Below are positions 2,737 to 32,000 of a stretch of DNA of 34,291 nt, piece by piece. Positions within the stretch are counted from its first letter, which is position 1, and each line of letters starts with the position of its first letter. A model generated the notes under the pieces. The model did not search any database. It saw only the letters and a program-made list of their open reading frames with translations, and was not told the DNA's origin. Origin of the DNA: Macrostomum lignano (taxonomy: Eukaryota). A program made the translations under genes and the position numbers. Where the stretch lies: assembly GCA_002269645.1 (NCBI GenBank), contig NIVC01004145.1:1-34291 (forward strand), written 5' to 3'.

Positions 2737-3878
2737 CTCCATTTCAGCATTCGAGGTGTGCCACGAAGCTCACAGATGTTCAATTGAAAATATATTTTTT
2801 GTGTAAGGTCTACTCAGATGTTATATTGCAAAAATGCTTTAAGTTTAATTTTAAAAAGATTTTCCTTACTGTAGTATGCATTTGATTTTTTTGTACAGTC
2901 ACCATCTACGTCGTAAATTCTAAAGAAAATTCACTCCATTTCAGCATTCGAGGTGTGCCACGAAGCTCACAGATGTTCAATTGAAAATATATTTTTTGTG
3001 TAAGGTCTACTCAGATGTTATATTGCAAAAATGCTTTAAGTTTAATTTTAAAAAGATTTTCCTTGCTGTAGTATGCATTTGATTTTTTTGTACAGTCACC
3101 ATCTACGTCGTAAATTCTAAAGAAAATTCACTCCATTTCAGCATTCGAGGTGTGCCACGAAGCTCACAGATGTTCAATTGAAAATATATTTTTGGTGTAA
3201 GGTCTACTCAGATGTTATATTGCAAAAATGCTTTTAGTTTAATTTTAAAAAGATTTTCCTTGCTGTAGTATGCATTTGATTTTTTTGTACAGTCACCATC
3301 TACGTCGTAAATTCTAAAGAAAATTCACTCCATTTCAGCATTCGAGGTGTGCCACGAAGCTCACAGATGTTCAATTGAAAATATATTTTTTGTGTAAGGT
3401 CTACTCAGATGTTATATTGCAAAAATGCTTTTAGTTTAATTTTAAAAAGATTTTCCTTGCTGTAGTATGCATTTGATTTTTTTGTACAGTCACCATCTAC
3501 GTCGTAAATTCTAAAGAAAATTCACTCCATTTCAGCATTCGAGGTGTGCCACGAAGCTCACAGATGTTCAATTGAAAATATATTTTTTGTGTAAGGTCTA
3601 CTCAGATGTTATATTGCAAAAATGCTTTTAGTTTAATTTTAAAAAGATTTTCCTTGCTGTAGTATGCATTTGATTTTTTTGTACAGTCACCATCTACGTC
3701 GTAAATTCTAAAGAAAATTCACTCCATTTCAGCATTCGAGGTGTGCCACGAAGCTCACAGATGTTCAATTGAAAAGATATTTTTTGTGTAAAGTCTACTC
3801 AGATGTTATATTGCAAAAATGCTTTTAGTTGAATTTTAAAAAGATTTTCCTTACTGTAGTATGCATTTGATTTTTTGT
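2737..3878. repeat. 197-bp tandem repeat, about 5.8 near-identical copies
   Basis: CTCCATTTCAGCATTCGAGG recurs at 2737, 2934, 3131, 3328, 3525 and 3722 (period 197), with few substitutions. Confidence 0.97.
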
Positions 3879-5485
3879 TTATTTATTTTCGTGGAACTGA
3901 ACGTGGAACTAAAAATCCGGTCATTAAATTGAGAGTCAGCCTTTTGACAGGGCTTACTTATTTTAATCATCTAAACATTTATGGATATTAAATAAACAAA
4001 TAATTACCATGCGGTGAGGGTTTTATTGTATATTTTAGCTGTAAATGAACTTTTAGAAGCTATTTATAACATATAAAATTTATCAATTACCGAGAGCGTT
4101 TTGAAATAAAAGTTCTTTTATTTTATATTTTCGAGGAACGGGACACTTTAAATTCCTACTACGGATCTAGAATTTCGTTAATCAAGGTAGTCAAAGGCCT
4201 AGTCTTCGAACTTGAAGACGCTTGAGCTTGAGCATGCTCGGCCTTCTTATCCCTATTGATCTAATTAATCCGATTATTGATTTGAGCACTAATCCAAACT
4301 AAGGACTACTTCAGTAGAAGGACGGGAAACTACGTTTCTTGGAAATATAGGAAGCAGGTTTTAACTAAAAATGCATTAAACTAAAGTAACTAGACAATGG
4401 AGGTTTTCATTTTTTATTTCATTTAAAAGTGGGAATGCAGAATGATATAGCTTGAAAGCTTTGTCTTTGACATTAAGTCTATTAGTCAGGTTGTAGAATT
4501 AGTCAGTTTTCAGTCAGTGTAGAGAGGAGCAGATGCATTAGACATAACTCAAACAACTCATTTACTTACCAGGGTAATGGATGCCAAAAACTGTGCCTTT
4601 TTAAGAACCAGTTAATAGTTTTAAAAACTGGTTTGCTCATCATTTTTTTTTAAAGAACAAAATATGCATAGAACTTATATACTATTATATATTTGCCTTA
4701 TTTTTAATGTTTATCTGTTGCTGCCTAAAGCATGTTATTTTTCTTAACAACTATCTAACTAATTAATAATAATGTTGTCAGTTTTGCAAATAATGTGATT
4801 AAATGAACTTTTATTACTTTATAATAATAATCAGTTTGTGTGTAGGCCTAAATTGTCCTGCATAGACATTTTTTTGCATTTGAAGTTTTTTTAGGCTAGG
4901 CCGAATGACAATAGAAAAATTAGCATTTTTTACTACTTTGCAAGAGAACAAAACTTTGTTTTATTTTTTTACTTTTGTTTTATTTTTTCTTGTTTTATTA
5001 TCCAAAATGGCATATAAACAAGAGGAAACAATGGTCTCCTTGCTAGATCTTTCTACAACCCTAATAACAGTACTAATGGTTTAGATAAATGGCAAGAATA
5101 AATACCTTTTCATCTAATTAGTAATAATTAGATGGGCATTTTTGCGATTATAGAGAAAAAAGCCTAAAAACTAGAGAATATTTAATTGGAGTTAAATTGA
5201 AGCAGTAAGTGGGCGCTAGGCCCAAACTGATATATTTATACTAGACAAACTTTGGGGGTTAAGCCCATAATAATGAGAGGGGTGGAGTGTGCGACTGAAG
5301 AGAAAGGTGAGAATGGAGAGCCAATCAGAAGGCAGTAAGGGAAAAAGATAGGAATAACAAGATTGAGCTAGACAGAGAGAGAAAACAGAATAAACAGAGA
5401 AAAATGAAGGTGAACTAAAAAATGACTAGGAACGTTGCAACAACAACTTAACAGTAAGAATACCAAGCCATTTTTCTGCGCATCA

Positions 5486-6090
5486 AACTACCAAGAGGGG
5501 GGGAAACCCCCCCCCTGACAATTTTTTTTGTCAGAGAAATTTGCATCAGGGTATCCATAGTCACTTGGTGTCATCTGTGACTTGGTGACAGTGTCGGGAT
5601 GATGATAGAATGCTTAAGAGACTAGTTGAGAATGTCTAGCAGTTGAGGCTTGCCCACTGTCAAGGCTTGATTGGTGAAACTCGAGAAATTTGCATCAAGG
5701 TGTTCATAGTCACCTGGTGCCACCTGTTGAAGGTCTAGAAGCTCTGTCTCAGTGAAGGCCAGTAACCAACAAAGTTAGAACTAATGCAGACAGGTGTTCG
5801 ACATGTTGATGAAATTTGGAGGCTTGGCAAGGCTGCACTGAGGCGCAGTGCTAATTGGTACATAGGGGTGTATTGAATACACTGGCGCTTATAGGAAAGA
5901 TCCGACCTTTCGGCAGAATTGTCAAATATCTCGATGGTCCAAAGGGCTAGGGACTGGATTCTTGTTTGAGAAGGTGTGCAACAAAAAGTTAGCCTGTGTT
6001 CTTGAATTTCGTGTGCCTGCGTTGCTCTATTCCAGCATAGCAAAAAAATTGTTAGGGGGTAGGAAAATTCCCCCCCCCCTCTTGGTAGTT
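5486..6090. mobile_element. Non-autonomous TIR element (605 bp, MITE-like)
   Basis: Imperfect ~45-50-bp inverted termini AACTACCAAGAGGGGGGG...ACAATTTTTTTTG (5486-5530) and its reverse complement (6041-6090). Internal direct repeat GAGAAATTTGCATCA.GGT.T.CATAGTCAC near 5535 and 5683. Abuts the broken end of the decayed mariner. No TSD found. Confidence 0.7.
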
Positions 6091-7098
6091 CTACTGTTAA
6101 TCTGAGCTTCTTCAGAGACAAGATGTAATGCTCTACATTGACAGTTGTGTTTGGCTCTAGAAAGTTGATAGTCAGAAGGCCATGGCAATCAAAAAAGCAG
6201 CAGCATCAGCTTCTGGCAATGAACTTCTTGATAAGCCTTGCTTGGAAGGTCGGAACCCCTTATTGCCCAGACCTTTGACTCTTCTTTTGTTGGGGGGTCA
6301 AAGTGAGGCAGCCAGGTTTCATCACCTGTGACAATGAGCTGTCAAAAGGCCTCCTACCTGCCTCGCTCTTTGAGAAACCTGAGATTGCTCTTGTACATGT
6401 TCTGTTGCTGTGCTTTTATCTCCAGTGTGAGAAGCCTCGAAACCCACCTGGCACTGAGCTTGATGAGATCTATGCTGCAGATGCAATGATAAACTATGGA
6501 CTTTGGCATATCTAGTCTGTTAACAATTTCCCTGATGGTAAGGCAAGCATCATCTTCAAACAGATCCAAAATTTGATTGCTCAAAGTCTTGGATGTGGAC
6601 ATCCTTGGCTGACCACATTTTGGCCATGCCGTCACATTGGTTCAACCAGCCTCAAACTCTTCAATCTACCAGTAAATCGTGCTCTTGATCACTGTGTGCT
6701 ATTTATGGATATACTGCAGTTTACTTAAAATCTCCAATCCATTGTGTCCAAGGCTCCATAGAGTAAAAATGGCATGGTACTACCCCTTTTTTGAGTGGAT
6801 GTCCAACATGTTGGCACAAACTTTGTTGCTTCAGAAGCGCAAGTTGACAAGATGTCTGGCTTAGCTGTGCCATCCATGTAAAGCTTAGTATCAGCTGGCT
6901 TTAATGATACTGCATATGTTCATAGTTTTGGTATTCAGCCCATAGACATGCGTTACTATATCTTATCTTATTAACATAATTCAAAATATATTGCATAGAT
7001 AGATAAAGCCACTTTAATGAAATGTCAATGTCATTTATGTATCTGACTCTAGCTATGAACTATGTTGAAAAGTCCCACTACTTTTTGGACACCCCTTG
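6091..7098 (-). mobile_element. Decayed, 3'-truncated mariner (Tc1/mariner) element; transposase pseudogene 6809 down to 6091
   Basis: TIR reading TA-CAAGGGGTGTCCAAAAAGTAG on the minus strand (TA at 7099-7100). The frame from ATG 6809 gives an HTH (STIYW*IEEFEAG*TNV), SARWVSRLLT and LIVTGDETWLPHFDP, with at least 6 in-frame stops and a later frameshift. The catalytic C-terminal half is missing. Confidence 0.85.
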
Positions 7099-7454
7099 TA
7101 AATCAGTTTTTTGGTCAAAAGGATCATAGTCCTAATGTAAATTTCCCATAAAGAAACCCAAAATATTTCTTTCATAAAAAATAGAATAATTTTTTTATTC
7201 CTCAACCAAATTTAACAAATGAGGCCATTTTAGACTTCTGTCACTTAGATCTATCTAGCTAAGAAATAAAAATTATAGAAATATAAAATTTCAAGATCTC
7301 ACTGGAGTCCCTAGATATAGCATTCTTGTTTTCATATAAAATATTAATACAAATTACATGAATAATTGCAAACTAATTGGACTTAGGAATGAAAGGAAAT
7401 ATATTGAAATCTAGGCTGAAGTCTTAGATTGTAGATAAAACAGGTGCCTAATAG

Positions 7455-7635
7455 TTCCCACTATTTAGTAGGCTTGCTTTAGCATGCCTAGCTCTACTAC
7501 CTAGTAACAATGATAGTAAACAAGCATTCTTAGACTTGGTAAACATCCTGACAAATAAGCGCAATTGCCTGTCAGGTGATATGATCAGAGCAGCCTTGCA
7601 AGTAAAGTACAACCTCAAATCAGCAATAAAGCTTA
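7455..7635 (+). pseudogene. hAT transposase C-terminal dimerisation-domain remnant
   Basis: Reads FPLFSRLALACLALLPSNNDSKQAFLDLVNILTNKRNCLSGDMIRAALQVKYNL, matching the hAT dimerisation pattern (FP.L...A...L..P.SN...ER.FS......T.KRN.L). Flanked by stops and CpG-depleted. Confidence 0.6.
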
Positions 7636-8647
7636 AGCTATGGCTTCAATTTTAGCAAATCACTTATTGTTGTTGCATGAACTGCGTCCCAACATTATAG
7701 GCAAAGAGAATGCAAATGGCATGCTTTAGAAGCAGAGGCAAATATTAAGAAGAGGTGAGAATTAGAGAAGGCCTAGCATCAATGCCTGCAAGCAGAGATT
7801 TGGAAGGCCAAAGAGCAGCAGCAGAAGAAAAAGAACTGAGTAAACAAGAGGCTACTGCCACTGCTATGCTGCAGGTGTATCAAGAAGCAACGAAAAACAT
7901 TCAACAGCTATGCAAGGGTCTTGCTGCCAGTGCTAAGAAGCAAAAGTAACTTTGTGTAACTTTGTGAACATGTGAGACTGTCACACTAGACACCATCCCA
8001 GACAGCTACCCATCCTTTCCTGCCTAGAGTTAGGCAAGGCCATTTAATATTCAAGCAATTTAATTTATAAGTTTCATTTCATATTTTTATTTCTATTTTA
8101 AAGTTTTATATTTTTCTCATAATTGTAGGTTTCTTGTCTATCCTTGTTGAAATTTTCAATCTTCTACAAAATCTTGTAATAAAATCTGCCATTGTACTTT
8201 TTTAAAATGCTTAATTAGGCTTCAATTCAATTAGGCTATTCAGTCAATATTGTAATCGTATGTACTTAACTCTTTCTTTGGCTAGACTAAAATAGTCTGA
8301 AGTTCAAAAACCTTAAATGTATTCATATCCATCATTAAAATATAATTTATATGAAATATAATCTACCAAAATTCTGAAAATGGGTTAGGTGCAAGTGCCA
8401 TGCCACAAGTTCTTAACATGTTATCTCAAATAAATTAGAACTTTTTTAGGAAAAAATCTAGAAATATTCAGGCAAAGACTGCCAAGATACATTGCTCAGC
8501 TAATAAAAAAGCCCCAAAACATCCAGTTTCAAAGCAAGAAATTTTGGAGGAAATTTTTTCTTGCAGAGGAAACTTTACAGTTAATACCAAGTGGCAACAC
8601 TATCCCCAAATCATTGCTCCTTAGTGACAAGAGAGACAAGCAAAATA

Positions 8648-9978
8648 CAAGGGGTGCGCAAAAAGTTTTGGCAACTGGGTTCCCAATTGCAGATAAATTG
8701 TTAGTAAATCTTAAAACGTTATTAAAGTCCTTCAATGTAATCTCCGCCACGTTCTATGCATTTCTGGTGACGGCGGATCCATGCCTCGAAGGCAGCGCGG
8801 TACTCTGAAGCTGGCATGGTGTTCAGCTCTGAATTAATGCGGCGAGCCAGGTCTTGGGGCCGCTGAAAATGGCATCCAGCCATGCATTCGGTCAGCTTTG
8901 GGAATGCCCAGAAGTCACAGGGTGCCAAATCAGGACTGTACGGAGGGTGCGGTATCACTTTGAGCTTGTTATTGGCCAAAAAGCTTGTTGTCATGGCCGC
9001 AGTGTGGCTGGAGGCATTGTCGTGGTGCAAGTGAATTCTGCCACTTTGGAGGCAGGTTGGCTGCTTTTCCATGACTGAAGCCACGACTTTAGGCAAAACC
9101 TTGCCAGTATAGAACGTGGCATTGACGTTCTGTCCATTTGGCACCATAACAACTGTCTCTGGCCCATTGATGCTGAAAAAGACGACGAACATCTGCTTCC
9201 TTGAGTGAAACCCTGGGCGCAGAACAGTTGGACGGTCTTCATCGGAACCAATCCAAACCTTGTTTTGGTTCTTGTGAGGCACTTGGAAGTAGTAGAACCA
9301 CTTCTCATCGCCAGTCACGACATCAGTAAGTCGTTTAGTGCCACCTTCGCCGAAGCATCGCAGAAATTCTTGGCTGCATCGAACCCTCTCCTGCTTCTGC
9401 TCTGCTGTCAGTGCATGAGGTACCCAAGGGGCCGTGACCTTGCGGAAGCCAAGATGGTCATGCAAGATGGTTCGGACACTGCCATCAGAAATGCCGATTG
9501 TCTGGCTAAGTAGTGCAACAGTGATATTGCGATCTTCGTCCACCAGCTGTCACATAGCAACAATGTTCTGCTCGGTCACGGATGTCATTGGCCTCCCAGA
9601 ACAAGGGCTGTCGGTCATGGAGCGTCAACCAGCACTGACCAATTCAATCCAACGGGCGACGGTGCGGTACGAAGGGGCTTGATCTGCTACAACTTGGACT
9701 AGCTCGGCATGAATTTTGGTGGCATTTTCTCCAAGCTGCGATCGCATGAAAACATAAAATCTCCACTGATCAGCAGTGATATTTTCCATTTGAAGGCTGA
9801 AAACGAGACTGTTCGTTAATCAAAATGCTCTAGGAAGCGAAAGAATCAATGCAATGAGCTGAAAACTTATGGACAAACGCAAAATATGGTCATATTTATG
9901 AGATTAAAAAATGGCTACGTTTAAACGTTTATTTAAAAAGTTATGAGCCAGTTGCCAAGACTTTTTGCGCACCCCTCG
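8648..9978 (-). mobile_element. Full-length mariner DNA transposon (1331 bp, D,D34D)
   Basis: 31-bp TIRs at 8648-8678 and 9948-9978 (2 mismatches), with TA duplications at 8646-8647 and 9979-9980. Contains the transposase described next. Confidence 0.97.
8722..9789 (-). pseudogene. Mariner transposase, 355 codons, inactivated by two in-frame TGA stops
   Basis: ATG at 9789 in frame with ORF 8722-9543. HTH (APSYRTVARW), WVPHALT, VTGDEKW, HDNASSH and YSPDLAPCDF with 34 residues between the 2nd and 3rd Asp. TGA at 9625-9627 and 9550-9552, at positions where Arg (CGA) is plausible. Confidence 0.93.
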
Positions 9979-9989
9979 TAGCTACATTA

Positions 9990-11818
9990 CAGAAAAAAGG
10001 ACAAAACATCACATAGACACCTCAACAAATAATGCATTGGAACCCCTGAACTTCAATTCTGTTAGCATAGCTACTGCAAATCAGATGACCATAGAAGCAG
10101 CAGTAGCAAGACACTCTAGACAAATAGGCCAGCTATGACCAGTCTATAGAGCAGTGCCACTATTGCCATCTCCAATGTCTTGCAAGTTGCAGCTAGGTTC
10201 TGGTCGATTAGGGCCTGGCATATGGGCAACAGAGCCAGAACTGCTGCTGCTAGGGCCTGGCTGGTCACCTTCAGGCTGGTGGTCACCATCTAGCTAGTCA
10301 CCATCCAACTGATCACCATCAAGCTAGTGATCAATTTCTGGCTAATTATCATCAGGCTAGTGGTCACCATCTGGCTGGTCACCATTAGGCTAGTGATCAC
10401 CATCTAGCTAGTCACTAGCAGGTGGGTAATCACTCTCCAGCTGGTCAATGTCCAGTTGGTTATTGGCAGCAAGATGGTCAGGTGGTCAGGCTAAAGTGCA
10501 GCAAGCAAAAAATGGATTGCCACTTGAGCCAGTCTATGCAACACCTTGATGGGGATGATTTGCTTACTACTTAGCAGTTTGTACACCCAACATATTCCAA
10601 TATTCTTCATGATAAATGGCACCTTTTGCATTCAACAGATCACCTGGCCAAGCAGCAGCCTTGACATGTTGGCAAAGTAGGTTGAGCACATGCTATGAGT
10701 GAGTGATAGGTATTGGTTGATAATGAAGTCCCAGAGGTTGGGATGTGCACTCTTAACAAATGTCCTCTAGCAGTTGTGGTACAATTCCTGCTTGCTATTT
10801 GTCCTTTCATCGCAATTGTGCACAGAGATTATATCTATGCCTATCTTCTATAGCTAGAATATCTAGACATACTTGTGAGTACAGTTCAGCTGCTATAGCT
10901 TCTGTGCCAAAATGGAGGTGTTGAATATACATTATTTGGGTGCAAAATTGCATGGACTGGAGCAATCATTGCTGCTAGCAGCAGAGGAAGACATGTTAGA
11001 AGCCGAGAGTAGTTTGGGATTTCAGCATGGTGAGAAACATCTGACTAGAGACCCAGTTTCTTCAGCTTAGCCAATAGCCAGGATAGCCTTAGCAACTTGG
11101 AACTAGTAGCCATGGATGCTAGCTTCCTGATGAAACTCTAAGGAGGTCTTGTAAATAGCTAATTCCAAATCAGCCATTAGGCTGGCAGGCTAGAAGCATA
11201 ATCATATGTTGTTGAGCTTTGTCCACACCATATAATAGGTATCTTTCAATTTCTCTATTAATTGTGCAAAAAATGGAAAGAAGTAGCTACATTTGGTGAT
11301 GCCAATGGTAAAAAGTTGATAAAAAAAGCCTTGGTGTCACATAAAAAGTTCCATTAGCAAAAACTTAGTCAGCACTTTCCAGTTTATGTAGCAGGATAAG
11401 ATTGGCAAAAAAGATTGCTACCTGTCCATTGGCTTGCATGCTGCCTTGGTATACCTTGCTAGGTACACTGTCAGCATCATAGTATTGCAAAGTGTTGTCA
11501 CCATTCAGCATCTGGATAGCAACTTTAATAGAATTAGGAATTCTGGGCTGAATGGTGCATCTAGCATAGTGTGTTCTGCTCAACCTGTGGGAAAGCCATA
11601 GTATCTTGTGCTGGATCCCTGCTTAATACAAGGTCAAACACAGTTCAAAGATGCTTGGATGGCTGATTCACAATAGCCTTACTGAGCTCTTACTTCAATG
11701 TGAGGACTCAAAGCTGTTCTTCACTCTGAGGAGCATGGTTGTAGATACTATTAGTGCTTAGAATGTTGCCATTAAGCACTGCATTGGCATTGCAAGTCAT
11801 AGTGCAACATTTGAAGTA
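9990..11818 (-). pseudogene. Mutator-like (MULE) transposase pseudogene, main part: FLYWCH second half, DDE core, acidic DQPDGDH repeats, C-terminal RING remnant
   Basis: Minus-strand translation through stops gives YFKCCTMTCNANAV...YNHAP; VFANGTFYVTPRLFYQLFTI (11320-11365); MADLELAI; HGY*FQVAKA (CxxH region, ~11100); RTNSKQELYHN..HPNLWDF (10725-10810); (D/H)QPDGD repeats (10255-10450); PICLE..YGHLICSSYA..CIIC* (10020-10130). Many stops and frameshifts. Confidence 0.85.
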
Positions 11819-13584
11819 CTTACTTACTTACTACTGATGGGGGGGTGCAGGCGCCGCGAATAGGCCGCGAGGCCCCTATCGCAACCCCAAGGTAAAAGAG
11901 CACAAGGATTAACCCTGGGGGTGCGCCCAGTCCCCGCCAGTAGTCGGCAGGTTCCCGGAGTCCCGGACGAAGGCGCGCAGGTCACGGATATTGTCCGGGG
12001 TGGTCAGCTCGTCCATCCGCTGGGGGTGGCCGAGGTATTTGTGCCGCGCCTTGTTGAAGTAAGGGCAAAAAGTGACGTGATGCTCTGCAGTCTCCTCTCC
12101 TATGCCACAGAAAGGACAGGTGGGAGGGCAACCGGTTTGCAATGATATATGTCTCTGGAAGAATCCATGGCCGGTTAGGACCATGCACATCTCCCTGAGG
12201 TCGGTTCTGTTAAGCGAAATCAGATAATCAGAGACTTTCCTGTTCAGGTTAGGCATGGCAGAGCGGCTCTGCCTGTACTCGGTGCAGCTGTTCCAGTGGA
12301 GGTGGTGCTGCTGATGGAGCCACCTGTTGATATGGTGGGTGACTTGCGACCTAGGAGTGGGTAGCCTCATCAGACGATGGTTGCCGTCTGGGTTGCTGCC
12401 CTCCTTGGCGAGAGAGTCTGCAAGCTCGTTGCCCAGGATGTTGCTGTGACCAGGTGTCCAGATAATTCTAATCCTGTTAAGGACTGAGAGAGATTGCACA
12501 CTGCGGTGGCATTGAGATACTGTAGTAGCGGAGATATTCTCAGTGGTTAAGGCCTTAATAGCAGCTTGGCTATCAGTGTAGAAATTAATGTCAAAGTTAT
12601 TAATGTTCGCCTGAAGCAGTTGCTGGGCACACTGCTCAATGGCGCAAATTTCAGCTTGGAAAACTGAGGTGTTTTCACCAAGGTGCAGACTTTCCTGGAA
12701 AAGCATCTTACCCTTGTGGAAAATGGCAATACCCGTTCCAGCATGGCCGTTGAACAGTGAGCCGTCAGTGAAGCAGTGAATGCCCTGGCTGCGCCGGTTC
12801 ACACCGACATCCAGCGGAATATTGTCTCGGCCAGGGATGGTGGTCTTGAAGCCCCTCCTGATGTTGAGGGCGGGAGGTCGACTATCCACATTACCCAGGT
12901 CCATGTGGATGTTGTTGAGGTCGCGGCGGACAAAGTCCATATGCGGGATTAATGTTTTCATTGGCATAAAGCCAGAGGGTGCGTTATTTAACGTTTTATC
13001 TCTGATAAGCCGGGAGGCAGACTTCATAGCCTCCGCCCTAATGAATAGGTGAAGCGGAGGCAGGTTAAGGATAGTGTTCAGCCCCTCATAGGGGGTAGAC
13101 GGGTACGCACCTGTGATGGCACAGCAAATGCTGCCCTGAAGCTGGTACAGGCACTGATGGGCGGTCTTCTGCTCCAACACGCTAGTCCAGATGAGACTCG
13201 CATATGTGATACTGGGCCGGATGATGCCGGTGTAAATCCAACGGACCGTTCTAGGTGAGAGGCCCCAAGTCGGCCCGATGGCTCTGCGCAGCTGGGCAAA
13301 GCAGCGTTTTGCCCGACCGATGATGTTATCAAGGTGCTTCGTCCAGCGCAGGTCATGCGTTAGCGTCACACCAAGGTATTTGACCTCCTTCTTGAAGGGG
13401 ATGTTTCTGCCATAGACAGTGAGGTTTTTCATCTCCCATGCATGGCGCTTGGTGAAAACGACAGCGACAGTCTTAGTGACGCTGATATTTAGGCCATGCT
13501 GCGTAGCCCAGTCGGCCGCCTTGTCGGCGAATTGCTGCATCAGGTTGCGCAGAGTGGCGGGGTCGGGTCCGCTGACAACCGCGG
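11819..13584 (-). mobile_element. 5'-truncated non-LTR retrotransposon (RT C-terminus, RNase H, CCHC-like knuckle; LOA/R1/I/Tad1-type)
   Basis: 11-bp TSD CATTTGAAGTA at 11808-11818 and 13585-13595. (TAAG)n 3' tail at 11819-11833. Uninterrupted ORF remnant to the stop at 11909 with KYLGVTL (RT thumb), [35 protein letters not shown] (RNase H) and [23 protein letters not shown] and the endonuclease are absent. Clade assignment is tentative. Confidence 0.95.
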
Positions 13585-13691
13585 CATTTGAAGTATTCTT
13601 TGCCATTGTACTTATGGTTGCCTATAAACAGATGCCACTCATAAAGGAGTAATCTAGAGCCTCATTGGCCTTCAACAAATTGGAAGGCCAT
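13585..13691 (-). pseudogene. 5' end of the same MULE transposase (FLYWCH first half)
   Basis: ATG at 13691 gives [35 protein letters not shown], which joins in frame across the LINE TSD to CTMTCNANAV on the other side. Confidence 0.85.
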
Positions 13692-15445
13692 TGTCAATGC
13701 AAATCAAGATGTCTATGGCTATACATATGGCAAGGTGATCTACAAAACAGTGGGAAGAGTGGGAGCAAATTAGGATTTAAACAAATTTAGACAAAATTGG
13801 AAATGACAGGACAAAATTTGATCTACAAGTAATAGTATCCTGCCTACTAGCATGACATTTTATTTTTAAGTTTTTCTGAAAAATTGAACTAATTACCAAA
13901 AATGTTAAAAGACAGAAAATACTGGAAAGCTTTTATTACTAAGCTACAGTACTTGATGACTGCTACAAGGTGAAAAAAGATTTCTTTTTAGAATTAGGCT
14001 ACTTGTTTCATTTCTAATAAGTAAAGAGTACTTGATAATTTGCAAAAAAACAATTACAATTGCCAATGGGGTATTTGAAAAAAATGGACATAAGATAATT
14101 TTTTTACCTTTATCATACCTGTGTTTGCAAAATGTATAAATTAAATATAAAAGGTCAAATAAGCTAAAAATAGGATTCTACCAATGTATAATTAATTAAA
14201 GAGAATTGAATTCTATATCAAATTGGCTCAAGAATTGCAAATTGTTGCTAATAAAATAATTTATAACTAGGAATGAATGAAGTAATAGAAAAAGTTTTGT
14301 CTTTAGGGCACACTAAGACTATTCATTCATTTTAGGCATAATCACTTTTAGCCCAAAAACACTATTTTCAGATGCCATATTTTTTATTTGACATCCTGGC
14401 ATCAAAAAAACCAATGTCATAGGACATTCTGGGTCTAAAAACTAGATATCAAAACCTTTTTAGGGTTTGATGCATCTATTATTGGTATCAAATTTTGGAC
14501 CCTAGATGCCATAAAGTATCTGACTTCTAAGAAACTCAGCACTAGGACATACTTTAGTCAAGCCAGGTCTAATATATAAGTAATAATAAGAAACTATTAG
14601 TCTAAGTAAAAAACTATCCAATTCTCAAATTCAAGTTAATCTAACACTAATAGCCAATACCTAACCACAAACATAGCCAAAACACAACATAAACTTCAAT
14701 TCATAAAATTATATAATATACAAAAACTAAATGTGTCATAGAAATTAAATGGAGCTGCATAGTGAAACTTGGATTCTATTCCTAATATAGCTTATTTGGG
14801 CTTATGCACATTGAATTTAATCCAAGATACATTTGCCAATGTAACAGAACTTTTGTCTATGGTAGCAAGGCTGGCGCAGTGGCATTTGATTTGGTCCAAC
14901 AAGCATCAATTTGGTCCAAATGCTTGTGAGCCAATGGCAAACTCTTGCCTTCTTGCAACTGCCTAAAGGTTGTTGCGCACCGCTGGAGTATTTAGCATCT
15001 GTATTCCCGCCTGGCAAATTTTGGCCTTGTCCTCTGGCAATTCATCTGGCTGCAATTCTGGTTTTCATCTGGGAGTGTAATGTCATTTGAAAACTGGAGA
15101 AAAGCTGAAAGTTTTGTCTACAAACCAGACAAACACGTTTCATGTCTCCAGTTTCATCTGGAATTGAATCCAACATATATCCAAAAATATCTCCAGTTTG
15201 CTACCCGAGAAATACTGGAGGATAACTGGAAAAATATCCAGATTAAAACCAGACAATTGTCCTATTGTAGGCAGTACAGGAGGAATTCTAGATGAAAAGC
15301 AGGCCAAATGCACAAAAGCCATTGTATTTTGTAACTCAGTCATAGAGTGCATACATAGAACATCTGTCATTTGTTGTCTGATTATATACTAAGGTAAAAC
15401 GAATAATTTGACTTTACTTTGCTCGTTTATCAAAGAAATATATTA

Positions 15446-15484
15446 GACCCTGAAGAAAGCCTCGTTCTAGCTGAAATATTGGTC
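15446..15484 (+). ncRNA. Minimal type I hammerhead ribozyme motif (Penelope-like), upstream of a (TATC)n array
   Basis: GACC-CUGAAGA-A-AGC(cucguucua)GCU-GAA-AUAU-U-GGUC: stem I GACC/GGUC, catalytic core, short stem II, palindromic AUAU stem III. Confidence 0.7.
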
Positions 15485-15538
15485 ATTTTCTAGTTTAAGT
15501 GTGAAGTAGCTTCCACTTTGTGTGTGGTTTGTTTTACG

Positions 15539-15685: not shown

Positions 15686-16361
15686 GAGGGATCATTGATG
15701 GCAAAAGTGTATAATGCATTCCATTTTGCTACTTGTATACACACTGTAAAACAGCATTTATTATAAAAAGAAAGTCACATTATTATTCATCAAATGTGCA
15801 TTAATAATTGCAACATTCGGAATATTAGCATGGGTGTATTAGGTAGAAAATCATTTTATTTCGTCGAAGCAAAATAACATTAAAATTATAGCAAAAGGGC
15901 TTGTTTAGTAAGACATTATAAACAGCTTTAAACTTACTGATATGACATCATGAAGTTTGTGCATAATATATTCACTGGATATGCACTCCCAATTTTTTAT
16001 TATATAGATGGAGAACTGCATAATATCATTTCAATGCTTTTGGTGTGATAGCTTAATGTCTTTACAAATTTTGTATCTTTTTTAAAATGGTCAAGTAACT
16101 GAAATATGAGACAATCCTATAAATAAAACTGCATAACTCATATAGAAGTCGCTTGAGCTGCCAAAACTATTGGAGCAGACAAGTTTTTTAAAGAGAATTA
16201 CTAGAAAGACGCTGGGTGCTACCTTGTCAAGGGTACCCCCACAGCAAGGGTTTTGCTACTCCTTAAAAAGGGGGTCTACTATACCCCAGTATGCTCGCTT
16301 TTGGGCTACATAAAAGCTTCTAGTAAAACATAATAAAAATTTTGTCATGTGTCCTGTCAGG

Positions 16362-16980
16362 TTTTAGAGAATGTGATATTTAGGGATTGTGATGTGTCTT
16401 GTAAGATGTTAGAGAATGTGATATTTAGGGATTGTGATGTGTCTTATAAGATTTTAGAGAATGTGATATTTAGGGATTGTGATGTGTCTTGTAAGATGTT
16501 AGAGAATGTGATATTTAGGGATTGTGATGTGTCTTACAAGATTTTAGAGAATGTGATATTTAGGGATTGTGATGTGTCTTGTAAGATGTTAGAGAATGTG
16601 ATATTTAGGGATTGTGATGTGTCTTATAAGATTTTAGAGAATGTGATATTTAGGGATTGTGATGTGTCTTGTAAGATGTTAGAGAATGTGATATTTAGGG
16701 ATTGTGATGTGTCTTATAAGATGTTAGAGAATGTGATATTTAGGGATTGTGATGTGTCTTGTAAGATTTTAGAGAATGTGATATTTAGGGATTGTGATGT
16801 GTCTTATAAGATTTTAGAGAATGTGATATTTAGGGATTGTGATGTGTCTTGTAAGATGTTAGAGAATGTGATATTTAGGGATTGTGATGTGTCTTATAAG
16901 ATGTTAGAGAATGTGATATTTAGGGATTGTGATGTGTCTTGTAAGATTTTAGAGAATGTGATATTTAGGGGTTATGATAT
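16362..16980. repeat. 45-bp minisatellite, about 13.5 copies, with higher-order variant pattern
   Basis: Unit TAGAGAATGTGATATTTAGGGATTGTGATGTGTCTT(G/A)TAAGAT(G/T)T. Variant order ABABAB-ACDB-ACD. Confidence 0.96.
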
Positions 16981-17201: not shown

Positions 17202-21644
<4,443 letters not shown>

Positions 21645-21802
21645 ACCCGCGTCTGCTACTGATTGCCATGGCGACCGGCTGGACGGCCAATAAGTTTTTT
21701 ATAGTGCTAATTAGTAATCATTATATTCTTCCCTTTCTCTGTCTTCCCTCTCGTCTGTTTGTCCCGGCCCGGCCCCTTTACTCCTCTTGCTTCCTTCTCT
21801 CC

Positions 21803-22405
21803 GTCTATCCCCTCCCCTGCCTATCCCTTCCTGTCTATCCCCTCCCTTGCCTATCCCCTCCTGTCTATCCTCTCCCCTGTCTATCCCTCCTGTCTATCCC
21901 CTCCCTTGCCTATCCCCTCCTGTCTATCCCCTCCCCTGCCTATCCCCTCCTGTCTATCCCCTCTCCTGTCTATCCCCTCCCCTGTCTATCCCCTCTCCTG
22001 TCTATCCCCTCTCCTGTCTATCCCCTCCCCTGTCTATCCCCTCTCCTGTCTATCCCCTCCCCTGTCTATCCCCTCTCCTGTCTATCCCCTCCCCTGTCTA
22101 TCCCTCCCCTGTCTATCCTCTCCCCTGTCTATCCCCTCCCCTGCCTATCGCCTCCTGTCTATCCTCTTCCCTGTCTATCCCTACTGTCTATCCCCTCCTG
22201 TCTATCCCCTCTCCTGTCTATCCCCTCTCCTGTCTATCCCCTCTCCTGTCTATCCCCTCCCCTGTCTATCCCCTCCCCTGTCTATCCCCTCACCTGCCTA
22301 TCGCCTCCTGTCTATCCTCTTCCCTGTCTATCCCCCCTGTCTATCCCCTCCTGTCTCCTGCCTATCCCTTCCTCTGTCTATCCCCCTCCCTCCATCCCCT
22401 CCCCT
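21803..22405. repeat. Pyrimidine-rich ~17-bp minisatellite (CTGTCTATCCCCTCCC variants)
   Basis: Read directly; strongly strand-asymmetric. Confidence 0.93.
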
Positions 22406-22916
22406 TTTTCCCGTCTGCATAATCCCTTAAAAACCTCTTGATCCAGACAAATAATCACCCTGATTTGGATGGTGGCTTACTTTCGTACTGCCAATTTTCA
22501 TATTTTAGTAACTAAATTAGTACATTTGATTCATTTGCAAAACTGTATGTCACATACGCGCATTATGTACTGAATGTGTACGCCCAAGTCCTTCGTTTTG
22601 CCCATTCTGGATGCTCTATTTTTCTATTTTGTTCGTTCGATATTACTTGATAAATTATAAGTAGTATTGCAAGAGATAGCAGAAAGAAATTGGATACAAA
22701 GCATTTCATATCGCTCCGCCACACGGATCGTTGATTCAATAAGCAATTTATTAGCAATGCCGATGTCTTTGCGAGTAGAATTAAGTCATTTTTTATCATA
22801 TTTACCTGTCGCAGTAATTAGTCCTGTACAAAGTACTAATGTGTTGATTTCGGCCATTTAATGTTTACTATGTTGTTTAAACCCCTATTTTACCCGCACG
22901 GCTATCTCTCTTATCA

Positions 22917-22976
22917 TCTGTCTGTCTGTCTCTCTGTCTGTCTGTCCTTCTGTCTTTTTGTCTTTCTCTGTCTGGC

Positions 22977-23019
<43 letters not shown>

Positions 23020-23165
23020 GTGTCTGTCTTTCTCTGTCTGGCTGTCTGGCTGTCTGTCTGAGTGTCTGTCTCCGTGTCTGTCTTTCTCTATCTGGCTGTC
23101 TGGCTGTCTGTCTGTCTGTCTGTCTGTCTGTCTTTCTCTATCTGGCTGTCTGGCTGTCTGTCTCT
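22917..23165. repeat. Degenerate (TCTG)n microsatellite
   Basis: Read directly. Confidence 0.93.
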
Positions 23166-23391
23166 CTCTTGGCCTTCTTATCTTTACCTGTCATTTACCG
23201 GTTTCTATCGGTTTTTACCTTCCCGTACTGTATTGATGTGTTGTGTAGGCTGTAAATTCAGACAAGAACGTTCAAAAAAAGAATTTTATATTTAACATAC
23301 TGCATACTCGCATTTACAGTAACTTCACCTTTTTATTTGCAGCGCAGGAAGCCACTAATATCAGAGAATTTCTGCACGAATATCGGCAGCC

Positions 23392-25291
23392 ATGATGATG
23401 CTGAATAGATCATCGCCAGCAAATTCAGAGTCGGCAGCGGAGGCACCGACGGCGTCGGCTCCCGCCGTTCTGTCGTTGAGCAAGTCGGAGCCGCGCGACT
23501 CAGACAACGACGAAAACATTGACGTTGGCGCCGCCGCGGCGGCCCCTTTTATTGGAGAGCTGGCCGACCAGACTGCGGTGCCTTCGACAACCGAGAATCC
23601 GCAGTCGATGCATGCTGCTGTCAGCGCGACTGACAGCGTCGGCGGCTGCAGCGGCGTTCGGCGCAAAGACGTTAAAGTGTGCCGAGTCTGCGGCGACAAA
23701 GCGTTAGGCTTTAATTTCGACGCCATCAGCTGCGAAAGTTGCAAGGCGTTCTTTCGGCGGAATGCGCTCAAGCAGGATGTGAGTCAGTTTTTGATTTGTT
23801 GAATGTGGTCGCAGGGTCCTCAAAACTGAAAGTCAGGAGCAAATGCTTCTGGGAGAGATTGTGGTGCTGTAGGACTGTGGTGCTGTAGCATTGTGGTGCT
23901 GTAGCATTGTGGTGCTGTAGCATTGTGGTGCTGTAGCATTGTGGTGCTGTAGGACGTGGTGCTGTAGCATTGTGGTGCTGTAGCATTGTGGTGCTGTAGC
24001 ATTGTGGTGCTGTAGGACGTGGTGCTGTAGCATTGTGGTGCTGTAGCATTGTAGTGTTGTAAGATTTGTTTGATAGAAATTCTGTAAGACAGGAGTTCTG
24101 TAGAACAGGAGTTTTTTAGGAGAGGAGTTCTGTAGGACATGTCTGTAGGACATGTCTGTAGGACATGTCTGTAGGACATGGCTGTAGGACAGTTCAGTAG
24201 GACAGTTCTGTATGACAGGTCTGTAGAACAGGTCTGTAGAACAGGTCTGTAGGACAGGTCTGTAGGACAGGAGTTCTGTAGGACAGGAATTCTGTAGAAT
24301 AAAAATTGCTTTGAGTTATTAAAACCGTGCTGTTTCCATTGGTCTCACACGAAGCAATATCAAGGAAGCCGCTACACTCAATCAAACACCAGGTGCCAGC
24401 CTGCATGTTCACCCAGAACTGTTCCGTTACCGTGGCAACCAGGCGATTTTGCACCCATTGTCGGCTACAAAAATGCATACAGGTTGGCATGCGACCGGAG
24501 CTAGTTAACGCTGATGAAGTTCGCGGTAAGAAACTGAGACGAGAGGCGCCGCCGCAACTGCAGCAGCAACAGCAGCAGCAGCATCCACAGCAGCAACAAC
24601 CACAACAACAGCCTCTCCAGCTGCCTCAGCAGCAGCCTTCTCTGCACATTCCTGCCACCGAGGAACCGTTGACGTCGCCAATGCCGACCCCAGCAGCAGC
24701 GGCGCCCGGCCCTGCCGCAGCAGCAGCCGTGCAGCAGCAGATGGTGCTGAACCCCGCACTGCACGCGGCCGGTGGCTGCCGCTCTCTCACGCACGAACAG
24801 TGGCTAGCGGTGTCCGACTTGCACCAGGCGTACGAGCTCAGCTTCTCGGACACGTCCGAGGACGCCACTCCGGCCGGGTGTCGCAATCTGAACACCCTGG
24901 TGAACTCGTCCTGTTTCATAGTTAAGAAGCTCATTCTGTTCGCTAAGAAGCTGCCAGATTTTATCGGCCTGGGCCAGGCCTGCCAGATTGCTCTGTTGAA
25001 GGGCGCCGTCATCGGGACGCTGTTCCTGCGCTCCGCGGTGCACTACGATCGGGAACGCGACGTCTGGGTTACACCGAAAGGCGACGTGCCAACCGCCATC
25101 CTGAAGGACATACCCGGCTTTGCCGAGCTGCACGACGATCATTTGAAATTCTGCCGCCTGTTTAAAGACTTGCTGCGGGACCCGTTCCTGGTGCCGCTGG
25201 TGCAGGTGCTGGCACTGTTCACCCCCGATAGGCCTAACGTCACCGACCGGAGCGCTGTGGCCGATGTGCAGGACAGGTGCGACTCGTGGGG

Positions 25292-25331
<40 letters not shown>

Positions 25332-25334
25332 GAC

Positions 25335-25395
<61 letters not shown>

Positions 25396-25478
25396 GACTG
25401 TCTGTCTGACTGTCTGTCTGTCTGTCTGACTGTCTGTCTGTCTGTCTGTCTGTCTGACTGTCTGTCTGTCTGTCTGAC

Positions 25479-25523
<45 letters not shown>

Positions 25524-25598
25524 GACTGTCTGTCTGTCTGTCTGTCTGTCTGTCTGACTGTCTGTCTGACTGTCTGTCTGTCTGTCTGTCTGCCTGCC

Positions 25599-25649
<51 letters not shown>

Positions 25650-29016: not shown

Positions 29017-32000
29017 CGTGTTGCTCAAACTATTGTAAGAGCAACTAGGTTTAGAGTTATAATGAAGTTTTTTCCTCAAAAATTTTACTTAACAATTTGA
29101 TCTTAAAGAGACCAAAAAAAGTGTTTTTGTTAACTTTGTTATACCCTGTTACAGTCACAACAATTTTAAAAAAGCGTGTCCCCAAGTTGCCGCGCGGTTA
29201 AAGTCAAAACTGAGGAGTCAGAAAATGTAGAAAAAAATTTGTTGTTTCAATTGGTAATTTTTTATACAATTTTTTATATTTCCATTAAGTGGTCTCAAAA
29301 AAACATTTTTAAAGCACAAAATACACCTCTTAATAAATTTCCTACCCATTTGTTAATCTTCACTTTTACGGAGCTGTACGGACGCAGAATCCTATATACT
29401 AAAAATGTCAGAAACTAAATATAGTATTCTAAAAAAATGTTTTATACAAACCCGTGAAAGTAGTTTTTATCTGAAAAAAATAGGTAAATATTGCAATAGA
29501 TATTTTTTAAATAAATATTAAGCTGGATTTTGTTAAACTGCTTACTTTGTTTACGTCGCGCCTGTTTGTGTTCTGAAATACTCTCGTTAATTTAGTTATC
29601 AGTTTCATGTTAATAAGTACTTTATTATTGATGTTTGGCCTGGTTCTTCTTACGGATGTGAAATATCAGCAAACTTTTTTGGATTGAATTAAATATGAGA
29701 TTTAGATATTGATTACTGACTTCTGTATTTCAAGCATTGCAAACGTCTAGCATCAATTTTCTGCTTATCTAATTTATGAACAATAATCGATCGAGGATTC
29801 TAGATATATGCTTTATTTTATAAGCCACGGCTTATGAATAGGCAAATGACTCATGAGACTGAGGTTTAAATAATTTTACTGAATAGAATGACAAATAAAG
29901 GTGTCTATGATCTATCAAGTTTTTTTATAAAATAGCTTTATCCACCCTCGCTCTTGTTTAACTATATTTTTGTTCTGGGGCATAATTTGTAGTCTAGTTC
30001 AGATTGCTATTTATATTTAACAGTCCGTGTCTTAGGCCTATTTGATTTTTTGCTAATGACGTAGTAATAAAAAATATAATGTAAATATAAAATTTTGTAC
30101 AGCTTTACAGCTTAGAATTACTTCGAAACTGATATATGTTTTTTTACAAAAGCCATTGGGCCTTAGCTAAGTGATAATCTACCTTATGATTACTGATAAT
30201 GATACTGTTTATTATAGCCATCACTATGCACTTTTAAGTATATATATAATTTAAATTGCTAAATAATTAACAAGTAGCAAGTAAAAATGGTAATAACTTT
30301 TTTAAACTTAAACTTTCTAGTTTCATATAATTTGCGATGTAAAAAGCTATATAAAATGTGACTTGCACTATTCTTTAAAATGTATAATTGCAATATGTTT
30401 TCATTTGCATTATTTGTTACATTTATTTCATTTAAAGCTCACATTATGAGCTTTAAGAACTAAGAACATGTTAAAAGTTAAAAATGCAAAACCTGATATA
30501 TTTGCTTTTTAAAAAATTAGAATATAGCATTATTTTATTATATATTTTATTGTTTACAAACTGGCTTTAAATGCCTAGCAGGAGTGTTTCCTTTTATACT
30601 ATTGTATATTTAATATACCAATAAATTCTTAACTTGCTTTAGTAGAAGTTTTTTTAGACTTAAATGTAAGTAAAATATGTTAAATGTTTTTCACTTTAAT
30701 TTCAGCCATGCCAGAACTTCTTTGGGAGATCTTCTCAGCTGCATTTTATGATATGCCTTTCATTCTGAGCTCTAAACCTGAGGCCTTACTTAAACAATGA
30801 AACTGGTGGACTTGCTGTATGTTACGTTTACATTTGGTTGAGTGAGTCTAGTGCTTTCTCCATGAACCAACCTGATCTGTCTGAGCAACCTGTTGCAATG
30901 TTGGCGACTCCTGCACCTAGCAGGCCACTTCTGCCCACAACTGGTTCAGGTGCTGCGCTGCTACTTTTGGATTCTGGCACCCAAGATTCTGGTGGCTATG
31001 TGGCCTACATTTTCTCTCAGACCACAAGACACACCTTTTTAGAACCTTATGTTTTATAGTGTGTTTTATTGTATGGGCCTAGTGGCTATACCAAAAATCT
31101 TGTTTTGCATTTAAGTTAATAAAACTTCTGCTTCAGGAATTTATTACTTGTGCCTAAAAATTCTAAAACCTATTTCTGTTGCCTGTTCATCTTTTTCACT
31201 AAATCAAGAGGCATTAAGAGCTTCATTTAGAGCTCTGTGAGATTCACATTTGTATTGAAACTGTTTGGATAGGAGCAAAACCATGCCCCCCCCACCCAGA
31301 TATCTTTTTTACCCTTCTTGAGGTAGCCATATTGATTTTCTGTTCTGGTCTGTGCAGACTGCTCTATACGTCCATGGCCATAGATTAAAATATTTGAGCT
31401 GATGCTGCTTTATTAATAAAACTTTTTATTATCAGATCAATGTGTTTGGGAAGTCGTGTTTTAAATCGTAGGCTCGTTTACTCGTATATTTGTTGAAATT
31501 AAGCAAGAGCTCATCAATCGTTTCGCGCTTGTTCCTGCAGTCTATCAATTGTGGGTCTGTAAGCCAAGCATATACCCATAAACTAATACGTGGCTGCTGG
31601 CAGCCACACATCACAGGTACATAGCTGGTTGAGCTTAAAAAGCACTTATTAATTATATAAGGAGTATGCTATAGTCAAAATAAAAGCATCCTAGCTTTCA
31701 AAGCTAGAACGTTACAACGCTACCACGCTGAAGAGGGCTCGTACTCTCATGCCAGAGCGAATGCAGAAAAGTCAATACAAAAGAGGCCAAATTGCAACGT
31801 CAAAGTGAAAATAAGGCAGCACATACTGCCAGTGTTCTCAAACTCTGCTCGAGCAGCTCAGACTGGCCCTGCTGAAACTGAAGTGCAGCATACTGCCAGA
31901 CTGTGCTCAAAATCTGCTTGTGTCGAACAAAGCTGAGTGACAGAGTCCAACTTGCAGCGATGCGCCAGACTGGATTCTGATCGACTACCCGCCGAACATA

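Follow-up and report, generated by a model that had tools for sequence, protein, structure and literature searches.

CpG decay with a possible CAG-context component in a nest of dead transposons of Macrostomum lignano

We analyzed a stretch of 34,291 nucleotides from the flatworm Macrostomum lignano (contig NIVC01004145.1 of GenBank assembly GCA_002269645.1, positions 1 to 34,291; hereafter the window), in which transposons of different ages form a nest close to host genes. The old elements of this nest, namely a MULE-like (Mutator-like element) remnant, a hAT-like remnant, and a mariner remnant (mariner-2), were methylated at CpG in the past and have lost nearly all of their CpG through ordinary 5-methylcytosine deamination, which left a surplus of TpG/CpA. 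The neighboring host exons, a young long interspersed nuclear element (LINE), and a younger mariner (mariner-1) have not lost their CpG. In addition, we infer with moderate confidence that C>T change in the old DNA is further biased, 2-5 fold, toward CAG and perhaps CTG. An initial annotation of the window had proposed a repeat-targeted, heritable hypermutation or methylation system acting on CWG (W is A or T). Our preferred reading, to which we give a probability of about 0.4, is that the ordinary CpG decay of a nest of dead transposons was joined by CAG-biased C>T change as a by-product of DNMT3-type methylation, and not by a dedicated system of repeat-induced point mutation (RIP) or CWG methylation. 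Overall, the window is best regarded as a case of ordinary methylation-driven transposon decay, possibly with a CAG-context component; the initial observation was partly confirmed and its interpretation partly supported.

CpG loss and the TAG/CTA surplus

The observed/expected ratio (o/e) of CpG was 0.04 in the MULE-like remnant (9991-11830, minus strand), 0.09 in the hAT-like remnant (7101-8640, plus strand), 0.16 in mariner-2 (about 6101-7100, minus strand), and 0.0 at 13611-14300, where the MULE-like element continues upstream of the LINE. It was 0.70 in the LINE (11831-13610, minus strand), 0.75 in mariner-1 (8641-9990, minus strand), and 0.9-1.0 in the host exon blocks. The initial annotation had described the three old remnants as nearly free of CpG, the host exons as retaining it, and the young LINE as unaffected, and all three descriptions hold; in the LINE, TAG is also under-represented. 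Historical methylation in the window looks to have been directed at the transposons (6101-14300) and not at the exon blocks of UCH/USP and of a nuclear receptor (18506-25394). Methylation of transposons over gene bodies is unusual for an invertebrate.

TAG and CTA were counted together and tested against 300 dinucleotide-preserving shuffles per segment. The MULE-like remnant had the strongest surplus of any element (101 against 72 expected, z = +4.6), and a surplus was still found after its tandem repeat had been removed (83 against 64, z = +3.2). Surpluses were also found at 13611-15538 (z = +3.5; +2.0 for 13611-14300 alone), at 4001-6090 (z = +3.5), and in the hAT-like remnant (z = +2.3). 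While z ranged from +2.3 to +4.6 in these four old segments, it was below zero in the four control segments, for example -0.9 in mariner-1, -1.8 in the LINE, and -2.5 at 26-34 kb. In the old segments, TAG/CTA and CAA/TTG were above the dinucleotide expectation and CAG/CTG and TAA/TTA were below it; in the controls this was reversed. The T fraction at YAG (Y is C or T) on the two strands was 0.63/0.64 in the hAT-like remnant, 0.65/0.63 at 13611-15538, and 0.59/0.51 in the MULE-like remnant. The change had been described as a symmetric CAG>TAG / CTG>CTA signature, but these are one mutation class viewed from both strands and not the symmetry of the two cytosines of a CWG site.

The dependence on context was summarized by the odds ratio (TAG x CAA)/(CAG x TAA). 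Pooled old DNA gave a value of 1.66 and pooled controls 0.51, a gap of about 8 standard errors. Among the old segments it was 1.35 at 4001-6090, 1.67 in the hAT-like remnant, 1.95 at 13611-15538, and 2.5 in the MULE-like remnant. The corresponding values were 0.48 in the LINE, 0.61 at 26-34 kb, 0.64 in mariner-1, and 1.17 in mariner-2. Across 1-kb windows, the log odds ratio fell as CpG o/e rose (weighted slope -1.04 +/- 0.22; Spearman rho -0.45, p = 0.013), while its slope on GC content was -0.26 +/- 0.88, and thus GC content does not explain the effect.

When the 16 contexts made of Y and the next two bases were compared between old and control DNA, the four CpG contexts were the most shifted to T. 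After them, the largest shift was at YAG (+0.82, z = 7.4), followed by YTG (+0.54, z = 5.2), and the remaining contexts showed hardly any shift or one in the opposite direction. The shifts of the other CpA contexts were +0.24 for YAC, +0.04 for YAT, and -0.35 for YAA. The YAG shift was largest after C, where the T fraction rose from 0.34 to 0.64, and it was almost as large after A and T.

Simulated decay and sites of known polarity

Decay was simulated from the sequences of the LINE and mariner-1 with 10-fold CpG hypermutability and otherwise context-free transitions. The odds ratio then leveled off at 1.0-1.1. Calibrated to the stop density of the MULE-like core (13 in-frame stops in 376 codons), the simulation gave 55-75 +/- 9 TAG+CTA per 1.84 kb, against 101 observed. 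Independent mutation of the first and third positions of Y-A-R keeps the sign of their association; therefore, a coding-like start (odds ratio below 1) cannot reach 1.7-2.5 without context dependence. When C>T at CAG, or at both CAG and CTG, was made 3-5 fold faster, the odds ratio reached 2-3.

Stops in the MULE-like element have to be counted along a corrected reading path, since its frame moves by one base at 11322, between ...PRLF and YQLF.... On the minus strand the path runs from 11622-11323 to 11321-10494, then through P-x-G-D-(H)-Q repeats (10485-10147) and a Cys-rich stretch (10132-10025); the frame at 11286-11173 appears longest to the eye but is a wrong one. Within the core, the coding strand has seven TAGs in frame, and the other two phases have seven and nine. 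In-frame TAGs cannot be ancestral, and yet they are as common as those of the other phases, so most TAGs arose after the death of the element.

All coordinates and codon readings of the initial annotation proved correct. The TAG at 11355-11357 is read as A-N-G-T-F on the minus strand, the TAGTAG at 11104-11109 as G-Y-stop, and the TAGs at 10092-10094 and 10068-10070 lie within the Cys-rich stretch. Mariner-2 has an in-frame TAG at 6780-6782 (CTA on the plus strand), and units of GAC TAG CTA GAT are present in the 15/18-bp coding tandem repeat at 10250-10447 (minus strand), within the MULE-like element. A 16-bp minisatellite (19842-19953, plus strand) has CTAGG in place of CCAGG in two of its seven units near 19870; given a higher-order period of 48 bp, the two may go back to a single event.

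In-frame stops were used as sites where the direction of change is known. The MULE-like core and C-terminal repeats contain 13 TAG, 3 TAA, and 3 TGA stops, with 15 CAG and 13 CAA codons remaining. In the core alone the ratio is 7 TAG : 3 TAA : 3 TGA, and five of the seven TAGs lie within CTAG. Mariner-2 has four TAG, no TAA, and three TGA stops, with seven CAG and five CAA codons left. For the two elements together, CAG>TAG occurred at no more than 17 of 39 sites and CAA>TAA at 3 of 21 (p = 0.025).

In the P-x-G-D-(H)-Q repeat (10250-10447), 6 out of the 11 Gln codons have turned into TAG and none into CAA, and several CCA have become CTA. By hand count, and presuming no differences among the units at the death of the element, C had changed at 9 of 20 sites in CAG context and at 8 of 63 other C/G (Fisher p = 0.004); in CTG context the count was 1 of 20 (p = 0.008). 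These tests of a CAG bias are only suggestive. Variants in the tandem arrays provided too few events for a spectrum, and mariner-1 was rejected as a proxy ancestor of mariner-2, from which it is too distant (30-37% amino-acid identity). We also compared 45 LINE paralogue proteins of M. lignano (UniRef/metaclust) with their consensus. There were 19 distinct C>T events, none of them at the 28 CAG sites and with no elevation at CpG; because the copies are young, the comparison has no power for the old elements.

Identity of the elements and neighboring features

The transposase remnant at 9991-11830 is presumably MULE-like; we take it as such solely from the motifs xGTF, GC-x-F, and RTN-x-x-x-E, read from its translation. 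Pfam gave no match to it even at E <= 10, either in any frame or along the frame-corrected path. Two word-indexed protein searches, one with an off-frame translation and one with the corrected path (E <= 10), found no homologue, and two spurious repeat proteins were all that HMMER returned in an exhaustive search with the longest stretch free of stops (85 aa). After TAG>CAG/CTA>CTG reversion of the element, Pfam still gave no match, and the same was true of control reversions (TAA/TTA, TAT/ATA, TAC/GTA, and CAA>CAG/TTG>CTG), so this test was uninformative. Thus, the name MULE given by the initial annotation found no backing in Pfam or in homologues, and the name hAT found weak backing: the sole domain match of that remnant is Dimer_Tnp_hAT, a dimerization domain, with E = 0.029, which falls short of the curated Pfam cut-off.

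Both mariners were identified by Pfam, the old mariner-2 by Transposase_1 (E = 0.007) and mariner-1, of intermediate age, by Transposase_1 and DDE_3. Mariner-1 has inverted repeats of 33 nt, and the two are 30-37% identical at the protein level (tblastx). The 5' inverted repeat of mariner-2 survives as a relic at 7075-7100 and shows 85% complementarity to that of mariner-1 at 8646-8671; therefore, mariner-2 reaches to about 7100, past the boundary drawn by the initial annotation. Mariner-1 has two in-frame stops and both are TGA. An in-frame TGA lies at the same aligned position in both mariners (6642-6644 and 9625-9627), after a conserved Gly. The two seem to have arisen independently, each by CGA>TGA (CpG) change at the corresponding Arg codon.

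A foldback/MITE-like (miniature inverted-repeat transposable element) element of 653 bp (5448-6100, no strand assigned) cuts into the 3' part of mariner-2. It has terminal inverted repeats of about 55 nt, one pair of which is 100% identical; these repeats include runs of G8/C8. TTAA flanks both of its ends, which suggests a piggyBac-type target site. The young LINE is 5'-truncated and has an intact 565-aa open reading frame (11909-13606, minus strand) with an RNase_H domain (Pfam), 86-97% identical to dozens of M. lignano proteins in UniRef, with hits at 94-97% among them; these identities place the window in M. lignano or a very close relative. It was inserted into the MULE-like element and splits it into 9991-11830 and 13611 to about 14300. 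The latter part, also on the minus strand, has a FLYWCH-like N-terminal reading followed by non-coding DNA. Other LINE-like fragments lie at 998-1439 and match portions of chimeric gene models of M. lignano at 41-59% identity; they look old, yet their CpG o/e is about 1.1, that is, without CpG loss. No dispersed repeats or duplicated copies were found within the 34-kb window.

Host exons were recognized by Pfam for a ubiquitin C-terminal hydrolase (UCH; 18506-18943 and 21177-21641) and for a nuclear receptor (zf-C4; 23392-23799 and 24327-25394). Tandem repeats are exceptionally dense (2737-3876, 16342-16978, 17443-18379, 18948-19477, 21803-22405, and 25292-25649), and several arrays adjoin or enter exons. 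They include 5.8 copies of a 197-bp unit (99% identity), 14 copies of a 45-bp unit with an open frame, about 0.9 kb of (AAC/CAC)n, 130 copies of (CTAT)n, 39 copies of a 16-bp unit, and 90 copies of (GTCT)n.

Possible origins of the CAG bias

The initial annotation had claimed that the C of CAG is preferentially lost. Composition and the few sites of known polarity agree with this, and the effect tracks CpG-depleted DNA, but it is modest, not general, and at about 2-5 fold does not deserve the term hypermutation. In the reading we prefer, C>T (or G>A on the opposite strand) would be about 2-5 fold faster for a C before A-G, and perhaps before T-G, than for one before A-A. Such faster decay would turn CAG/CTG into TAG/CTA, with TAA/TTA staying rare. 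Side-methylation of CAG is the most economical mechanism: a DNMT3-type enzyme of the worm might methylate CAG at a low level within the same domains that are methylated at CpG, and deamination would follow. With lower confidence, the surplus may be the footprint of such methylation in the germline or neoblast lineage.

Decay of methyl-CpG, driven by DNMT1/DNMT3 and known from vertebrates and some invertebrates, matches the old elements in their CpG o/e of 0.0-0.16, in their TpG/CpA surplus, and in that young insertions and unmethylated exons keep CpG. By itself, however, it makes no TpA and cannot give the TAG/CTA surplus or the flip of the odds ratio. In mammals, embryonic stem cells, oocytes, and germ cells show asymmetric, DNMT3-dependent methylation of CAG. 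The pattern in the window is like it in its CAG context, in its asymmetry in the one readable array, and in coinciding with CpG-methylated domains. It is unlike it in that no TACAG-like extended motif is seen and in that composition also fits some CTG>TTG change.

In human pluripotent cells, asymmetric and DNMT3-dependent non-CpG methylation occurs at a TACAG motif, and it was suggested in the same study that this methylation might increase mutation (PMC3950701). DNMT1 and DNMT3 are conserved in M. lignano, in contrast to planarians and parasitic flatworms, and its DNA contains 5-methylcytosine at a low level (PMC11292947; PMC9246332). Reviews regard the methylation patterns of free-living flatworms as unknown, and our literature search found no footprint of non-CpG methylation in a flatworm. 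We know of no evolutionary footprint of DNMT3-type CAG methylation. A further-reaching proposal, that DNMT3/DNMT1 methylates transposons also at CAG in the germline or neoblasts, heritably enough that deamination has marked old transposons across the genome with CAG>TAG changes, appears rather doubtful. The composition of one 34-kb window cannot prove that CAG changes faster, nor can it show a dedicated system.

The main rivals to the CAG-methylation reading are inherited composition together with the selection of examples, and neighbor-dependent mutation that is independent of methylation. According to the first, which we consider possible but less probable than our reading, no special process acted beyond CpG deamination and context-free transitions. 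The surplus would mostly reflect inherited composition, with contributions from cryptic (CTAT)n-like simplicity, hand-picked examples, and the ease with which stop codons are noticed. Several observations count in its favor or weigh against CAG methylation. No homologue or second copy of the MULE-like element was found from which its ancestor could be read, so its surplus could be partly inherited. TAG/CTA richness, which had been attributed to all the old remnants, held for the MULE-like and hAT-like ones but not for mariner-2, which is equally poor in CpG and has 19 TAG+CTA against 22 expected (z = -0.95) and two CTAG. The effect was also absent from two CpG-poor kilobases, 30001-31000 (CpG o/e 0.30) and 32001-33000 (0.38), where the log odds ratio was -0.84 and -0.17, and it is therefore not general. 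When low-CpG windows were pooled with tandem repeats masked, TAG/CTA reached just 1.15 times the Markov expectation and was not the most deviant trinucleotide, as others deviated equally.

Further points of this kind concern the direction of change. The four non-CpG contrasts depend on the same four trinucleotide counts, so both directions of loss can be read from them, and the counts fit a loss of TAA/TTA to TAG/CAA as well as a loss of CAG to TAG/CAA. The simulations with 3-5 fold faster change at CAG predict less CAG and more TAA than we see. The stops of the MULE-like core (7:3:3) are inside the range of the context-free simulation, and its synonymous codon pairs show G>A shifts in several contexts besides CAG. 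If the five stops within CTAG derive from TGG, CAG>TAG drops to 12 of 34 sites (p = 0.12). The repeat array was noticed for its richness in TAG, a post hoc selection bias, and the variants of the tandem arrays are few. Nor does any extended motif stand out among CCWGG, TACAG, and a preceding C or T; the shift is seen after A, C, and T alike, whatever base comes next.

Against inherited composition, the four old segments all deviate in one direction and all four controls in the opposite one. With context-free decay from coding-like starts, the odds ratio stays at or below about 1.1, and the predicted number of TAGs is 3-4 standard deviations too low. In-frame TAGs are necessarily derived and as common as out-of-frame ones, which argues that the TAGs were not inherited. 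In addition, TAGA/ATAG are not specially enriched, contrary to what relics of (CTAT)n would give.

The second rival holds that C-W-G changes faster than C-W-A in all neutral DNA and that the old elements are simply the oldest neutral DNA in the window. The segments 4001-5447 and 14300-15538 carry the surplus without a recognizable transposon protein, and the lack of an extended motif also suits this explanation. An effect of 2-5 fold falls within the known range of context effects on non-CpG transitions in other animals. However, the effect scales with CpG loss and not with GC content, and the AT-rich, CpG-retaining DNA at 26-34 kb, which may differ in age and constraint, shows the opposite pattern (odds ratio 0.61, TAG z = -2.5, CAG z = +4.3). 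We regard this explanation as unlikely.

A dedicated, repeat-targeted germline system, as proposed by the initial annotation, would act either by hypermutating repeats in the manner of RIP or by methylating CWG symmetrically, as in plants, with maintenance over generations. The surplus does sit in old transposons and is strand-symmetric, and CAA/TTG is raised too, as symmetric CWG decay predicts. Fungal RIP resembles the pattern in that C>T/G>A change strikes repeated elements and creates TpA and stop codons. RIP, however, is heavy, needs duplicated DNA, and consumes CpA/TpG regardless of the next base, whereas in the window CpA/TpG is in surplus, the change is limited to CAG and modest in size, and young repeats have escaped it. 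RIP yields a substrate index, (CpA+TpG)/(ApC+GpT), below about 1.03, and this index was 1.66-1.78 in the hAT-like, MULE-like, and mariner-2 remnants. Moreover, there was no elevated C>T at CAA, CAC, or CAT, and duplicated sequence is absent from the window. The young LINE and mariner-1, repeats themselves, have no TAG surplus, and the LINE paralogues had no event at their 28 CAG sites. The description RIP-like was thus abandoned and RIP rejected.

Plant CHG/CWG methylation, carried out by CMT3 together with H3K9 methylation, shares with the old DNA the C-W-G context, the aim at transposons, and raised TAG and CAA/TTG, and composition alone fits a symmetric CWG decay. Its symmetry fails in the only readable array, where CAG>TAG occurred at 6 of 11 Gln codons and CAG>CAA, a change of the C of CTG on the opposite strand, at 0 of 11; over all C of the array, changes numbered 1 of 20 in CTG context and 9 of 20 in CAG context. 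To our knowledge, chromomethylases are absent from animals. Plant-like symmetric CWG methylation is not shown, and the term CWG is not supported in the plant sense. Nothing separates a repeat-targeted, heritable system from a side-activity of DNMT or from plain neighbor-dependent mutation, and the effect is modest. We consider a dedicated system very improbable.

Least probable of all is an AID/APOBEC-like deaminase of single-stranded DNA, with TAGs as products of CC>CT or TC>TT: the YAG shift is indeed greatest after C and five of the seven in-frame TAGs of the MULE-like core lie in CTAG, but the shift is almost as large after A and T, YCA, YCT, and YCC are overall unshifted, changes lie unclustered and symmetrically on both strands, and DNA transposons lack a reverse-transcription intermediate. 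Dcm-like methylation of CCWGG was also rejected, as there was no dependence on flanking bases.

The window suggests that CpG methylation in M. lignano formerly targeted old transposons and spared the two neighboring gene bodies. If the further-reaching proposal of heritable CAG methylation is true, this would be, as far as we know, a first view of methylation targets in a free-living flatworm and the first evolutionary footprint of non-CpG methylation in an invertebrate. If the CAG bias does not hold genome-wide, the window would represent ordinary transposon decay plus a chance compositional quirk. If it does, non-CpG methylation can shape the composition of an animal genome over evolutionary time, and the flank preference of DNMT3 could be read from the sequence of old transposons alone in a lineage whose relatives have mostly lost DNMT1/DNMT3.

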